Assembly: GCA_018985225.1 (NCBI GenBank)
Contig: JADGIF010000264.1
Span: 1-12,318, forward strand
Source: Amoeboradix gromovi X-113
Lineage: Eukaryota; Fungi; Sanchytriomycota
Reading direction: 5' to 3'
DNA length: 12,318 nt
A program made the position numbers and the translations under genes. Under the pieces are notes generated by a model, which was not told the origin of the DNA, ran no database searches, and saw nothing but the letters and a program-made list of their open reading frames with translations. Below are positions 155 through 8,495 of the stretch, piece by piece. Each line of letters begins with the position of its first letter. The first letter of the stretch is position 1.

Positions 155-619
155 ATGCTGAAACGCAGTTGGATGAATAAACAGAACCTTAAGAAACTAA
201 ACAAGGAAGAGCTAGACCGGATAATACACGATCCAGAAGCTTATTTGATGACAGATGAAGGATTAAAGAGCCTTAAAGTCATGATAGTAGAGGAACAAGA
301 ACGACTGAGATCGATTTGCTTAGAAAATAAACAGGCACATCTGGCGCTACAAGGAAAGCAAAAAGAGCTTCTGGAGCTTCAAAATAACCTTAGTGAAATT
401 TACACTGAGTATCAGCAGCGTTGGATAGAGTATTCTGAGATCAGGGAATTGAATTCTTTGGAACCTAAACGCAAGAAATTGAGTATCTTAGTTAATGAGT
501 CCCAGAAGCAGTGCGATGAGATTGCAAACAAGTCTTATTATGATGATTTCTTACTAGACTATAAGGAAGCTAGAATCAAATATTATCAACGTCATTTTAA
601 ATTAGGCAATCTGCAGTAG
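155..619 (+). CDS. VPS37: ESCRT-I subunit Vps37-like protein (Mod(r) C-terminal domain)
   Basis: 154-aa coiled-coil ORF. The N-terminus LKKLNKEELDRII and the C-terminus ESQKQCDEIANKSYYDDFLLDYKEARIKYYQRHFKL resemble the Vps37 Mod(r) pattern (E.S..LA..F....DDFL..F...R..YH.R..K). The start may be the second Met (173). Confidence 0.6.
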   Translation: MLKRSWMNKQNLKKLNKEELDRIIHDPEAYLMTDEGLKSLKVMIVEEQERLRSICLENKQAHLALQGKQKELLELQNNLSEIYTEYQQRWIEYSEIRELNSLEPKRKKLSILVNESQKQCDEIANKSYYDDFLLDYKEARIKYYQRHFKLGNLQ

Positions 620-839
620 CTTTTATTCTACTAATTGCTGCAACACATGCCATTAAATAAAACTTTAAAATCTTTGTAATAAATCTCGATATTTTCAATT
701 AGTCTAATGCCGCAAATTCTCTAGGCCAATTTGTTTGCAACAAATCTAGAAAATAGAATCCAAGATGTGCTTGGCATCATAAAATTAACTCGTAGAAGAG
801 AAATGCCACGAATCATTTATTAGCTAAAAGCGTCAGTTC

Positions 840-1200
840 CTAAACACTGATATTTTTATTCTGATATATTGTTCACTAGTTGATCATATTTAGCCCGGTT
901 TGTTATACTTTGAACGTATACATTTTGAGCGATTACAATTACGACCGTATCATGCCAAACTAGAAAGACAATGTTAGTTACACCAAAGTTGTGTAAGCAG
1001 AAACACATTACTACTGTAGTTCAAATACCAATAGATGTTGAAGGCCACTTGGGTATGTCCTCTGGAGTGTTGTACTTGGTAGAGATGTGAATGCGTGTTT
1101 CAACAATATTCAAAGTCAAAGAGTGTCTATCGAATAAGGAGGGACTAGCTCGTAGCGAAGAGTAGCTGATAGGGAGCTGCCACCTAAAGTATTTGCGACA
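840..1200 (+). pseudogene. Degraded Fanzor1/TnpB-like nuclease relic (family II) with 3' tail
   Basis: Motifs appear in the expected order across shifting frames: I*PG (888-899, possible RuvC-I IDPG), YFERIHFERLQLRPY, NVSYT/KLCKQKH, SGVLY and RDVNACFNNI (RDVNAC at 1081-1098). The 13-mer agagatgtgaatg (1081-1093) is shared with the minus-strand relic at 8546-8558. Boundaries are approximate. Confidence 0.6.
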
Positions 1201-1232
1201 GAGTACGTGCTATTATAATTTACTGGTTTAGC

Positions 1233-1355
1233 CTCCTCGTTAAAAGTCCTGATTTCCGAGAAAATCGAGAATTTCCACAGAGAAACCAGCATTGTCAGAT
1301 GCTCCATTGCAGTGATTGCTCACGCTTTCACTACCCTGAGGCGGGATTGAATAAG
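1233..1355 (-). ncRNA. Predicted omegaRNA scaffold, copy 1
   Basis: Conserved block that overlaps and follows the Fanzor stop codon. Hairpins are CCC-GCCUCA-GGG (1345-1334), GUAGUGA-AA-GC-GUGA-GC-AA-UCACUGC (1334-1309) and GAUUUU-CUCG-GAAAUC. The block ends in ACGAGGAG, where homology between copies stops abruptly. The 5' end is approximate. Confidence 0.75.
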
Positions 1356-1700
1356 CATATATTTGATGTACATGTTCCTTGCTGCCATATATCTCTATTG
1401 TCGCATATTCGGTAAGACCAACCACAAGAACTATTAAATAAACGGTTTACAAGTTTATTTATCGTTCATCTCTTTCCTGGCGTTCAGAGACATCTAATTC
1501 TTTCATGTTTAGACCACTTCCTGAGTGTTGATGAATGTATGCTGTACCTGTTAGTTACTTATTTAGAATTGATTTAACATTTGCGAAAATGAAGGATATC
1601 GAGTGTTTAAGCTGTTAGAAAATCTGGAAAAGTCTTGAAATTATACAAAAATGCATACAAATTCGCGATAAATGATTTATTCAAGAAAACAATCGAGCTG
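1233..1700 (-). mobile_element. Non-autonomous, internally deleted Fanzor2-like element (family I, copy 1)
   Basis: Both ends match 7243-7820: 1647-1700 is identical to 7767-7820 (54 nt) and 1245-1279 is identical to 7253-7287 (35 nt). The minus strand encodes RD (1396-1391), a frameshift, then MAARNMYIKYMLIQSRLRVVKA* (1388-1320), the RuvC-III tail. It is joined to a probable N-terminal remnant (RIRCL..INKL..FNSSCGWSY). Confidence 0.88.
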
Positions 1701-5282: not shown

Positions 5283-7151
5283 CTATTTACTCAATACTCT
5301 TGCAGCTGCAATACTACACAGTCTAAGAACTTGCATTTGATCGGCGTTATCTATGTTCTTCAACAAGGCAGCAGCTGCCGCATCTCCAGCTCCTGTAACT
5401 GTGCTGTCAATTGTTTTTATAAGTGATGGTAAAACTACTCCAATATATCCATTTCCATGAAATTCTACTCCATCCTGGATATACTTGACATATTTCTTGT
5501 TCTGGCTAGTTCGTTTGATCAAACACATTCCGCTTTTTCCGAATTTAGCAAGAACGAGTGGAACCTTTTTCGCCAGCGCACATGCCATTGGAAGATGTTT
5601 ATTCCATTCTTCATTTAATAAATCCATTTCTTCTGTTTCCAGGTTCAGCTCGTCCACCAGTGTCTCTAATTCATGATGATTTGGTGTTATAATATCTACT
5701 AAATTACGGTTAATTGCATCAATTCCTCTTTTACATTTAGTTTTCGATATTGGTTCAAACAATGTTAATTTTTTCTTTGATTTAGCATTTTCAAATGCGA
5801 TAGTCAGGCCGGTATCTGATAAGTTAGCATCACAACAAAGTATGTCGAATTGCTGCATCAGTAATTCTTCCAATTTTGGAGCCGGGATGTCCTCCATAAT
5901 AGACACATCCGAATAAGCATCTGTTATATCGTTACATTTGCTCAAGAAAACTACGTATACACCTGTGTTACCGTTTGCACGATGTGTTTTAATGTTTCCA
6001 TTTTTAGTAGATTCAGAAATTACATTACCAAATGTGTCGTTGCCTATAAAAGTGTGAAGAGTGCAGTCTAAGTCAGTACTTAGTGCCTTGTACATGTTAT
6101 ATCCCACTCCACCTATGCTATTGCTTATTTGACTTGGTAATGAAGATTTTTTAGAAGAGTTGTGATGAGTAGCTCTGATTGTTACATCAATATTTATCCC
6201 ACCTAGTATTACTACTTTCGAAGAAGAAGGCGAATAAATTGAATTTTTATTTAATAAACTGTATTCCTTAGCTAATTGAGCACCGACTTTAACATTGTTG
6301 TAATACAACGCAATGTTAGATTCTAATGACTTTCCCTTTGTTATTTCATTAATCTTGCTCAAAAGATAAGGTGTTATTGCTTTTCCTCTAATTCCCAAAC
6401 TACTTGCAGATATCAATGCCTTGTTAATAGCCTCATCAATATCGTTTGGATTGGGGCTGTCAGCTGTAGGAATGGGGTTTGAAAATAAGATGCCTTTCAG
6501 ATTCAAACCAAAGTGAGTTTTCATAAGTATGGCACACTTGTAAATGTTTGGCTCATTAATTTCTACAGAAGACCCAGAATCATTAGTAAAAAAACCGGGA
6601 AATTTTTTGTTGCGGCTAATGTTGACAACAGGAACACCCAAAGTCTCTAGATATTCCAATGTACGAGGAATATCCAAAATTGACTTTACACCAGATGAAA
6701 CCACAGCAACATTGGATTTATCAAACTCGGTCAAATCAGCAGATATATCCATATCATCACCACGATGAACACCACCTATTCCACCAGTAGCAAATACTTT
6801 TATGTTAGCTTCGCAAGCAGCCCACATCGTGGCAGAGACAGTTGTAGCCCCATTTAACTTGTTGCTAATGCAATAAGAGATGTCACGTTTGGATATCTTG
6901 ATAGCAGGCTTAGTTGCTAATGTGAACAGGTCTTCTTTCTCTAATCCAATCTTTAGCACTCCGTTTATTATACCGATTGTGGCTGGCACTACCTTTTGCG
7001 CCCTTACTATCTCTTCTGCTCTTGTTGCTGTATAAAGATTTTCAGGATATGGCATTCCATGTGATATTATAGTCGACTCTAGCGCTAAGACAGGCTGACT
7101 TTGTTTAATTGCGTTTTGAATATGTTTTCCAAGTTGTATCATCCTTTTCAT
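5283..7151 (-). CDS. Bifunctional pseudouridine-5'-phosphate glycosidase (PsuG/IndA) + PfkB-family pseudouridine kinase
   Basis: N-terminal motifs ALESTIISHGMPYP, ATTVS, FATGGIGGVHR, DISADLTE and KSILDIPRTLEYLET. C-terminal PfkB motifs GGINID, GGVGYN, ITPN..E and TGAGD. This fusion is the typical eukaryotic form. Confidence 0.95.
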   Translation of the reverse strand: MKRMIQLGKHIQNAIKQSQPVLALESTIISHGMPYPENLYTATRAEEIVRAQKVVPATIGIINGVLKIGLEKEDLFTLATKPAIKISKRDISYCISNKLNGATTVSATMWAACEANIKVFATGGIGGVHRGDDMDISADLTEFDKSNVAVVSSGVKSILDIPRTLEYLETLGVPVVNISRNKKFPGFFTNDSGSSVEINEPNIYKCAILMKTHFGLNLKGILFSNPIPTADSPNPNDIDEAINKALISASSLGIRGKAITPYLLSKINEITKGKSLESNIALYYNNVKVGAQLAKEYSLLNKNSIYSPSSSKVVILGGINIDVTIRATHHNSSKKSSLPSQISNSIGGVGYNMYKALSTDLDCTLHTFIGNDTFGNVISESTKNGNIKTHRANGNTGVYVVFLSKCNDITDAYSDVSIMEDIPAPKLEELLMQQFDILCCDANLSDTGLTIAFENAKSKKKLTLFEPISKTKCKRGIDAINRNLVDIITPNHHELETLVDELNLETEEMDLLNEEWNKHLPMACALAKKVPLVLAKFGKSGMCLIKRTSQNKKYVKYIQDGVEFHGNGYIGVVLPSLIKTIDSTVTGAGDAAAAALLKNIDNADQMQVLRLCSIAAARVLSK

Positions 7152-7242
7152 TTCCTATATACCTGATGAAGGTGCGTAAGCTTTTACATGCACACAGTAA
7201 AGTTATAATCTATTCATCTGCATTGTATCGCCTATATGAGAA

Positions 7243-7362
7243 CTCCTCGTTCAGTCCTGATTTCCGAGAAAATCGAGAATTTCCACAAAGAAACTAGCAG
7301 TGCTAGATCTCCATTACAGTGATCGCTTACGCTCTCACTACCCTGAGGCGGGATTGAATAAG
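7243..7362 (-). ncRNA. Predicted omegaRNA scaffold, copy 2
   Basis: Same position and hairpins as copy 1: CCC-GCCUCA-GGG (7352-7341), GUAGUGA-GA-GC-GUAA-GC-GA-UCACUGU (7341-7316), CUAGC-ACU-GCUAG, GAUUUU-CUCG-GAAAUC and terminal GAGGAG. Confidence 0.78.
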
Positions 7363-7657
7363 GATGTATATGTTAATTGCTGCCATATGGTCTCTATCTG
7401 TCTTCAAATGACACTTTTTACAGGTGTAGGTTTTTAAGTTGGTTTTCTTTAGAGTACCACACCTTGTACATGTCTGACTAGTAAATGATTCATTGCATTC
7501 GACCATCGTCTTCCTCTTTGTTTACACTTGAACTTCAAGCGTTCCTTGAATGTGTAATGGGACGTTGTAGCCATATTTCTTCAGAATTGCTCAACAAGCT
7601 ACTTATCATTTGACTAGTCTTGAACGATGGCAAGTATATAAGATCATATGTCTCTGT
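7327..7657 (-). pseudogene. Fanzor2/TnpB-like nuclease C-terminal remnant (two frameshifts, N-terminal part deleted)
   Basis: TETYDLIYLPSFKTSQMISS / RNMATTSHYTFKERLKFKCKQRGR / MVECNESFTSQTCTRCGTLKKTNLKTYTCKKCHLKTDRDHMAAINIYILIQSRLRVVRA*. The last segment (7506-7327) is 59 aa, just under the ORF cutoff. Confidence 0.93.
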
Positions 7658-7970
7658 ATGCTGTACCTGTTAGTTATTTCTTTAGAATTGATTTGCCACT
7701 TGTGAAAAGGAAGAATATCGAGTATTTAACCTATTAGAAAAATCTGGAAAAGTCGTGAAATTATAGAAAAATGCATACAAATTCGCGATAAATGATTTAT
7801 TCAAGAAAACAATCGAGCTGCGCGATATAACGCACCAAAAATGATCTTGAAATTATTCAGGTTGTATACCTAGATCTTAAAGAGCAAAGCTGAAATAGGC
7901 GACGCTTGTTTATAGTAAAACAGATCCGGATGAAAGCTAGTTAAAAGGCATCGGAAACGGGCATGCGATC

Positions 7971-8330
7971 TTAATCTACTGATTTCAAACATATATTGGG
8001 AACAGCCACATGAAAAGAGCTTAGAGATGTAAAATAGTCTTTATCTGAAGTCCTTACAAGATAAACTAGTTTAGTTGCGCTTAGTTGTTTTAACAAGTAT
8101 CCCGTCCATTCGTAATTTTGATTAAAATGCCTCTCCCCCATACAGCATTCGCACTCAACGGTTTTAGAGTAAGTTGCATACAAATCATAAATTACCAATG
8201 TCTCATAAGGACTGTCTATCAATGATACCAGAACTTCGTCTGACGGATTATTCACTTGATAGCCATCAATTGTGTATCCTATAGGTGCTAACACATCCAC
8301 CAAGCCATAGCAATCGTTCAACATGCTCAT
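7971..8330 (-). CDS. Hypothetical protein (about 119 aa, ECECC motif)
   Basis: Open frame whose first ATG is at 8330. The track's start at 8369 is a GTG inside a transposon-relic tail. No family recognised. Confidence 0.55.
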   Translation of the reverse strand: MSMLNDCYGLVDVLAPIGYTIDGYQVNNPSDEVLVSLIDSPYETLVIYDLYATYSKTVECECCMGERHFNQNYEWTGYLLKQLSATKLVYLVRTSDKDYFTSLSSFHVAVPNICLKSVD

Positions 8331-8334
8331 GAGG

Positions 8335-8495
8335 AGTAAGTTTAGAAAACTTCTTTTTCCGCTTGGCACGTAATTCTGTAAAAACTATGCCAACTTTTTA
8401 AATGAATGTCTCGAGAAGGCGCAAGAGTTCCATATTTCATCATTTACACTTTAGGCAATTATCTGTGCCACAAGTTGTTCTTTTATCCCAACCTG
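8335..8495 (-). ncRNA. Candidate family II omegaRNA / structured 3' tail
   Basis: Immediately after the relic stop: CAGGUUG/CAACUUG (8495-8471), GGCA/UGCC and UUGGCA-UAGUUUU-UAC-AGAAUUA-CG-UGCCAA (8393-8363). It shares cctaaagt and gagacatt with the tail of the other family II copy. Confidence 0.4.

Follow-up and report, generated by a model that had tools for sequence, protein, structure and literature searches.

A probable miniature IS607/Fanzor2 derivative and its copies in the genome of the sanchytrid fungus Amoeboradix gromovi

A stretch of DNA of 12,318 nucleotides from the fungus Amoeboradix gromovi X-113 (contig JADGIF010000264.1 of assembly GCA_018985225.1; hereafter the window) contains, at positions 7243-7820 of its minus strand, a short element that is very probably a dead, neutrally decaying miniature non-autonomous transposon, whose parent was an IS607-type element with genes for the serine recombinase TnpA and for Fanzor2. 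It consists of a left end with the beginning of tnpA, fused to the last third of a Fanzor2 gene and followed by a right end, and its limits are those of a block shared by 42 non-redundant copies, which runs exactly from 7820 to 7243. An earlier reading of the window from its letters alone, which we call the original prediction, had proposed a hidden Fanzor2 element with both ends, and the shared block bears this out. The window copy does not amount to a Fanzor2 gene but is what is left of one. All genome searches were made in the Amoeboradix gromovi assembly of 10,549,678 bases in 1,319 contigs (GC content about 36%), in which the window is contig C508.

Identity and ends of the mini-element

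The peptides from which the original prediction was assembled are all recovered when 7200-7900 is translated on the minus strand: frame one gives YDLIYLPSFKTSQM, the second frame ATTSHYTFKERLKFKCKQRG and the third MVECNESFTSQTCTRCGTLKKTNLKTYTCKKCHLKTDRDHMAAINI. The third piece (60 aa; 7327-7509, minus strand) matches the Pfam family PF07282 (Cas12f1-like_TNB) with E=2.4e-14 and 53.7 bits, the cut-off being 26.3, and the profile comparison proposed for the stitched peptide was thereby answered in favour of a TnpB/Fanzor domain; other zinc-finger families gave E values of at least 0.047, the value of the runner-up, the C1 zinc finger. The first and second pieces are below the length usable for Pfam and are 85-88% identical in DNA to copies in which one 144-aa frame spans all three pieces; the frame of one such unbroken copy (L035) matches PF07282 with E=2.3e-20. 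Three frames have to be stitched in the window copy because it carries 1-nt deletions near 7582 and near 7513. It further departs from the family majority in 38 substitutions and in two more deletions, one of 13 nt near 7367 and one of 2 nt near 7254, its divergence from that majority being 6.6% and the family median 6.4%.

The features of the element are as follows; in all sequence strings a slash marks a junction, and L79 is the mimivirus TnpB-like protein of structure 9b0l, a Fanzor2.

7243-7820, minus strand (the sense strand): whole mini-element, a non-autonomous IS607/Fanzor2 derivative of about 580 bp, with 42 aligned copies of the same block
7655-7820, minus strand: left end with the terminus CAG/CTCGATTG, a conserved subterminal block (30-mer at 7778-7807), a conserved 5' leader and the first approximately 20 codons of tnpA, ..SKEITNRYSIQRH
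7652-7657, minus strand: deletion junction between tnpA head and Fanzor2 tail; the ACA at 7657-7655 occurs in both parental sequences, a 3-nt microhomology
7251-7654, minus strand, in three frames: C-terminal third of Fanzor2, comprising the RuvC-II strand, a helix, the relocated-Glu loop, the zinc ribbon, RuvC-III and a C-terminal extension
7628-7630, minus strand: Pro at the canonical position of the RuvC-II Glu (YDLIYLP), aligned with the Gly of ICIGKLN in L79
7513-7582, minus strand: span between the two 1-nt deletions, from comparison with the family majority
7489-7491, minus strand: relocated catalytic Glu (Ealt), six residues ahead of the first CxxC (NESFTSQTC)
7411-7470, minus strand: zinc ribbon CTRC...CKKC (PF07282)
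7390-7392, minus strand: RuvC-III Asp, the second D of DRD
7286-7312, minus strand: conserved hairpin GGAG..CTAGCA..CTAG..TTTCTC, immediately 5' of the right-end motif
7243-7283, minus strand: right end, with the conserved 25-mer GAAATTCTCGATTTTCTCGGAAATC (7259-7283), then ..AACGAG, then GAG
1233-1700, minus strand: second, shorter family member of 468 bp with the same left end and a different internal deletion

The codons that the original prediction singled out lie exactly where it placed them (Pro at 7630-7628, Glu at 7491-7489 and Asp at 7392-7390, the second D of DRD), and the Fanzor/IS607-TnpB signature that it described is present in full, with the Pro paired with the Gly of L79 and with the relocated Glu, CxxC..CxxC and the RuvC-III Asp in place. 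Yoon et al. 2023 (PMC10711439) characterise Fanzors, together with the IS607 'pro-Fanzor' group ancestral to them, by DPG in RuvC-I and a Glu six residues ahead of the zinc finger; the window relic fits the pattern ExxxxxxCxxC...CxxC...D used there for the relocated Glu.

To define the ends, the 42 copies were aligned together with their 40-bp flanks. They are alike from CAG/CTCGATTG at 7820 down to ...AACGAGGAG at 7243, the aligned copies running from ..CAG/CTYGAYTRTTTTCTTGAATAAATCATTTATCGCGAATTTG on the left to ..GAAATTCTCGATTTTCTCGGAAATCAGGACTTTTAACGAG(GAG) on the right, and the sequence outside is unrelated. The left flank is constrained (R in 81% of the copies, C in 93%, A in 83% and G in 100%); at the right end AACG is followed by A (95%) and G (93%), then by G (74%), A (81%) and G (79%), and then by random sequence. 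The right boundary may be set either at AACGAG or at AACGAGGAG. The dinucleotide AG stands at both junctions in 32 of the 42 copies, which would suit a 2-bp exchange core. The mini-element has no terminal inverted repeats (TIRs), and under four boundary models no flank repeat longer than 2 bp, and hence no target-site duplication (TSD), was found in the 42 copies. Visual comparison suggests a likeness, in the same orientation, between CTCGATTGTTTTCTTGAA at the left end and CTCGATTTTCTCGGAA at the right end, possible counterparts of the directly repeated subterminal motifs to which TnpA binds in IS607-type elements; a repeat finder did not report it. Without TIRs and without TSDs the element is not a miniature inverted-repeat transposable element (MITE) in the strict sense, and we label it a miniature non-autonomous IS607 derivative.

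Within the left end, ..SKEITNRYSIQRH is the start of the MerR-like helix-turn-helix (HTH) of the tnpA of IS607-type serine recombinases, and the variants that are richer in tnpA (the second copy in the window, L060, L041, L048 and L052) extend into SSTLRNWSKHGRIRCL, the MerR-like HTH of full tnpA genes. The tnpA head is fused out of frame, at 7655/7654, to the Fanzor2 gene just before the RuvC-II strand (..GCATACA/AAGACATATGATC..). The parental strings are ..GCATACA/TTCATC.. on the tnpA side and, in the longer relic L070, ..CTGACA/AAGACG.. on the Fanzor side, with ..GCATACA/AAGACATATG.. in the mini-element, and this 3-nt microhomology points to one deletion event behind the window subfamily. 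The frame of the Fanzor2 tail ends at a TAA located 6 nt inside the right end. The hairpin at 7286-7312 has a perfect stem of 9-12 bp in one subfamily, and the differences between subfamilies in it are one-sided only.

The window copy starts at the RuvC-II strand and has no RuvC-I, REC or WED, and upstream of the junction at 7655 it contains only the tnpA head and the left end. Because these parts are absent and the tail carries three frame-breaking indels, it can make no nuclease, and the copy is dead. That it is a non-autonomous deletion derivative, as originally supposed, agrees with the loss of RuvC-I, REC and WED, with the joining of the tnpA start to the Fanzor tail and with the existence of longer relics that reach RuvC-I.

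Copies and relatives in the genome

Two of these longer relics, L070 (contig C385) and L069 (contig C565), are 85% identical to the window tail and extend upstream through IALDPGVRKF, the RuvC-I motif. An uninterrupted Fanzor2 open reading frame (ORF) of 671 aa, with the HTH_OrfB_IS605 and TNB domains, is located on contig C542 (L061; 1473-3488, minus strand) and is overlapped in another frame by an ORF with a Resolvase domain; the same overlap of Resolvase and Fanzor ORFs occurs on contig C459. About 150 bp upstream of the ATG of the C542 tnpA we found A/CAG/CTTTTGACTA, the same kind of left terminus as that of the mini-elements. The original prediction had considered it possible that an intact Fanzor2 of this family exists elsewhere in the genome. 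The C542 ORF with its overlapping recombinase ORF upholds this expectation, with the caveat that the gene belongs to a diverged subfamily. On contig C459 (L065), an apparently intact 233-codon tnpA with the MerR-like HTH and the Resolvase domain occupies 1119-1820 of the plus strand and is a candidate transposase source for the mini-elements; the Fanzor ORF of that place stays open for 495 codons and breaks just past its own ..ILLP RuvC-II strand. Genome-wide, 12 matches to Resolvase and 21 matches to the N-terminal two-thirds of Fanzor compare with hundreds of tails.

In a search against the sequences of solved structures, the best match of the C542 protein was L79, with E=1.6e-13; the alignment sets the LP proline against the Gly of ICIGKLN and places the first Glu of TEEF opposite the Glu of NEY. 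An AlphaFold2 model of the protein, built from 40 sequences, is of moderate confidence (mean predicted local distance difference test, pLDDT, 70; predicted TM-score, pTM, 0.61), with residues 10-113 disordered. With this model, Foldseek returned 9b0l_P at rank 1 (E=3.8e-20, TMt 0.64) and then ISDra2 TnpB, the Fanzor1 structures (SpuFz, PpFz) appearing only at ranks 43-48. The 40-sequence alignment, made up of the C542 protein and 39 relatives, shows no variation at D471-P472-G473 (RuvC-I), P558 (the LP proline), C612, C627, C630 and D637 (the RuvC-III Asp), and conservation of at least 90% at E605 (the relocated Glu) and C614. The parent family thus combines DPG, the relocated Glu, the zinc ribbon with its Asp, an IS607-type tnpA, an N-terminal HTH and a Fanzor2-like fold, and these comparisons support Fanzor2, a predicted RNA-guided nuclease, as the source family of the relic. 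A short relic comprising only the C-terminal third, a part common to Fanzor1, Fanzor2 and TnpB, could in principle stem from a Fanzor1 or from an unrelated zinc-finger protein. We consider such an origin extremely improbable given that one and the same element links the relic to the head of an IS607 tnpA, that full-length relatives carry the N-terminal HTH_OrfB_IS605, that Fanzor1 came no higher than rank 43 in the fold search led by Fanzor2, and that the other zinc-finger families of Pfam fall so far behind TNB.

The genome-wide search with both end blocks, which had been suggested as a check, gave 431 matches to the left-end 30-mer and 563 matches to the right-end 25-mer at up to 3 mismatches; the reversed control motifs gave 0 matches each, and chance is therefore excluded. 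A DNA search with 7200-7900 returned at least 40 scored copies at 84-88% identity, of 865 candidates, all with the same two end points, and a genome search for the TNB family returned 150 scored places, of 560 candidates, all of which pass the Pfam cut-off. At roughly 0.47-0.6 kb per copy the family amounts to roughly 2-3% of the DNA of the genome. Different internal deletions all retain about 130-165 bp of the left end and about 160 bp of the right end. Many of the matches to the end motifs fall within about 300 bp of a contig end (e.g., C23:35-59, C298:14-38 and C36:103-127), and for this reason the repeat family is probably behind many of the contig breaks in the assembly; it also generates spurious short ORFs there.

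The copies are scattered over hundreds of contigs and have ordinary eukaryotic genes as their neighbours, which bears on the question whether the element is a nuclear transposon of the host at all. The nearest relatives outside the genome include entries from the brown algae Ectocarpus and Pylaiella, mimivirus supplies the nearest solved structure, large DNA viruses are enriched in Fanzor2 (Jiang 2023), and the assembly was obtained from whole-genome-amplified material, all of which would suit a fragment of a giant virus or virophage, or a bacterial contaminant with an IS607 TnpB. Besides the wide dispersal, such an origin is opposed by the flanks of the window copy, which are a PsuG-PsuK fusion gene and other host ORFs, by the identity of only 37-38% to those nearest outside relatives, and by the combination of DPG and Ealt, a eukaryotic or pro-Fanzor signature and not an ordinary bacterial one; it has, in our estimate, hardly any chance of being correct.

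The second member of the family in the window, at 1233-1700, has a longer tnpA HTH head (..YSIHSSTLRKWSKHERIRCL), about 130 bp of unrelated middle sequence, a RuvC-III tail (..MAARNMYIKYM) and the right end. It lacks the zinc ribbon and has both ends, and the zinc ribbon is therefore dispensable for the retention of the ends. Next to it, the minus strand at 620-1260 carries a ..FDRHSLTLNIVE.. stretch; comparison of 620-1232 with 7971-8369 (both on the minus strand) revealed no shared DNA repeat, and the 132-aa ORF at 7971-8369 has no Pfam match.

Three further observations concern the surroundings of the copies. The element at 7243-7820 precedes a 622-aa PsuG-PsuK fusion gene (Indigoidine_A and PfkB) on the same strand, with only 91 bp (7152-7242) between the right end and the ATG of that gene at 7151, and the relic therefore lies within the promoter or 5' leader region of that gene. 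In L070, at about 1700-1800 of C385 (minus strand), an inverted tnpA fragment (antisense translation EVVFELFSLIFVAFIENHNVNLYALTDLFK) precedes the Fanzor RuvC-I region; inversions therefore occur in the family too, as one might expect if a serine recombinase acts on its own ends. On C542, about 175 bp downstream of the Fanzor2 stop and on the same strand, a 303-aa ORF (387-1298, minus strand) without a Pfam match may be cargo of the element, which is present there in single copy, or may belong to the host.

Proposed mobilisation, decay and alternative readings

The first steps of the mechanism that we propose can be read from the element itself. One internal deletion of about 2 kb at the 3-nt microhomology joined the start of tnpA to Fanzor2 just before RuvC-II, and its product kept both ends, namely about 165 bp of left sequence and the last approximately 400 bp with the Fanzor2 tail. 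The mini-element would then have been mobilised in trans by the TnpA of full-length relatives. Transposition of IS607 needs no protein besides TnpA; the ends of the element lack inverted repeats, the target is not duplicated, and exchange takes place at a dinucleotide common to the ends and the target, which in IS607 is GG (Chen et al. 2018, PMC6188088). By analogy, the TnpA of the family would excise and insert double-stranded DNA (dsDNA) by exchange at a 2-bp core, AG and not GG, which would leave neither inverted repeats nor a target duplication, and the family would have been amplified in this way to about 430-560 copies. The right-hand sequence of about 160 bp, common to all deletion variants seen, is the predicted TnpA-binding right end and, if the loci of TnpB and other Fanzors are a guide, probably also a guide RNA (omega/reRNA) scaffold overlapping the nuclease gene at its 3' end. 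The preference for R-C-AG in the left flank predicts a CAG-like transposon-adjacent motif (TAM).

After insertion the copies decay neutrally, since substitutions found in a single copy are spread evenly over the codon positions (77/81/82) and along the element, including the right end; 20% of them are synonymous. A mutation bias resembling repeat-induced point mutation was rejected, the four transition classes being roughly balanced. An alternative genetic code was also considered for the internal stops, TGA being frequent in the TNB matches, and was rejected: each of the three stop codons is found, frameshifts are common, and the C542 tnpA is interrupted by TAG.

Several results weigh against this picture of a dead element amplified from one deletion product. 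One of them comes from variants shared by several copies, of which 37% are synonymous when the variant is present in at least 3 copies (Fisher p=9e-4 against the 20% of singletons) and 48% when it is present in at least 6 (Fisher p=2e-4). When 22 copies were picked by DNA similarity alone, the corresponding counts were 25:23 for shared variants and 39:136 for singletons (p=1e-4), and over these comparisons the synonymous share of the shared variants is 37-52% and the enrichment corresponds to an odds ratio (OR) of 2.2-3.8. Such a bias is not expected of a mini-element that is purely non-coding and has a single origin. The tail therefore diverged under protein-level constraint between waves of amplification, though the junction suggests a single origin.

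The other points on that side concern the parent, the target sites and the guide RNA. No intact parent of the window subfamily was found, the other tnpA-bearing places (C690, C787, C373 and others) having been outside the search. The C542 tnpA, in which the HTH is present, has one in-frame TAG at a Trp position; the C542 tail is 47% identical to the tail of the mini-element and has no DNA-level match to it, for which reasons the C542 Fanzor2 is placed in a different subfamily. No nested insertion that would display an empty target site was found among 80 loci, and each flank of the copy at 1233-1700 occurs only once in the genome. RNAalifold on 42 right ends found covariation worth only -0.36 kcal/mol with one compensatory pair, single-sequence folds are no better than those of shuffled sequences (z=-1.75 and -1.04), a search of Rfam returned no matching family, and the sequencing runs that contain the window are one DNA run, probably the one from which it was assembled, and zero RNA runs. 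Finally, the exchange core AG, the TAM, the guide RNA and mobilisation in trans all belong to the inferred part of the mechanism. As candidates for a full-length parent with the same ends we rejected C542, which has no DNA match, and L070, L069 and L075, which are themselves rearranged or deleted.

The synonymous bias is explained most simply if the copies recombined with functional full-length genes or were gap-repaired from them; the more novel alternative is selection that acts on the tail or on the tail RNA. In the latter case the mini-elements would not be junk, their tails being kept either for a working guide RNA, which would allow homing by a Fanzor2 acting in trans, or for a functional 144-aa tail peptide. 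The enrichment of synonymous changes among shared variants (p=1e-4 to 9e-4, also in the subset picked by DNA similarity only), the uninterrupted 144-aa frame in 7 of the 42 copies at about 6% divergence and the retention of the last approximately 160 bp in all deletion variants seen can all be read in this way. The 144-aa open frame, however, has no start codon of its own and no RuvC-I, the shorter variant has no zinc ribbon at all, singletons are neutral and evenly spread with the right end included, the fold z-scores and the covariation are weak, the frame of the window copy is broken, and the bias itself may also be obtained by recombination or gap repair against selected full-length genes. 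We therefore hold a retained function of the tail to be doubtful and prefer the decaying, trans-mobilised element.

A more elaborate possibility, which we put forward as speculative, though with somewhat better prospects than a retained function of the tail, is that the mini-elements are eukaryotic guide-only passengers. Each of the approximately 500 copies would carry a right-end guide scaffold that reads into its own flank, a Fanzor2 supplied in trans would re-cut the emptied donor sites at the predicted TAM CAG, and repair would restore the element. If this is the case, the same gap repair against full-length genes would explain both the repeated deletion derivatives and the synonymous-biased shared variants.

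Comparison with known systems

Fanzor2 genes in IS607-type elements are already known (Bao & Jurka 2013, PMC3627910; Jiang 2023), and the family described here resembles them in its upstream, overlapping serine-recombinase tnpA. With the mimivirus protein L79 (ApmFz2, 9b0l) it has in common DPG, a non-acidic residue at the canonical RuvC-II position, the relocated Glu before CxxC..CxxC, DRD and the N-terminal HTH. The identity over the structural alignment is 18%, however, and the C542 protein, unlike L79, has a disordered N-terminal extension of about 110 residues; moreover, mimivirus has three copies, whereas here hundreds of internally deleted copies are found in a cellular genome. The likeness to IS607, IS1535 and ISC1926 (PMC6188088) extends to the gene order, with a tnpA composed of a MerR-like HTH and a serine-recombinase catalytic domain followed by tnpB, to the lack of TIRs and TSDs and, in 32 of the 42 copies, to the same dinucleotide at both junctions. 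In contrast to the bacterial and archaeal IS607 elements, AG takes the place of GG, R-C is preferred in addition in the left flank, the elements reside in a eukaryote and the copy number is far above that of bacterial IS607.

The family is worth more than the dead copy in the window, since it comprises about 430-560 sharply bounded copies in a 10.5-Mb genome. The Fanzor census of Jiang 2023 reached a maximum of 122 copies per genome, and Gilbert & Cordaux 2013 saw no evidence for IS607 transposition in eukaryotes; the present set of loci is natural evidence for prolific transposition by a serine recombinase in a eukaryote. The description of the Amoeboradix gromovi genome (Galindo 2021; 10.5 Mb, 36.27% GC) makes no mention of transposable elements, and our literature search found no paper that names Fanzor together with sanchytrids. 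The family also yields a predicted AG exchange core, a predicted CAG-like TAM, and an intact 671-aa Fanzor2 and an apparently intact TnpA that could be tested.

In their mode of origin the mini-elements are comparable to MITEs and to internally deleted DNA transposons such as Ds and the non-autonomous P elements, which likewise arise by deletion at microhomologies, keep both ends and are amplified far past their autonomous parents; they are unlike MITEs in being without TIRs and TSDs. A second parallel is offered by the PATE-like derivatives of IS200/IS605 in bacteria, which are short and protein-less, keep both ends and the right-end guide-RNA region and depend, as is proposed here, on proteins supplied in trans. 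Those elements are moved by an HUH enzyme that acts on single-stranded DNA, whereas a serine recombinase acting on dsDNA would be responsible here, and the guide RNA of the present family is putative. Taken alone, the locus in the window is ordinary; the family to which it belongs is an unusually prolific addition to the known Fanzor2/IS607 elements.

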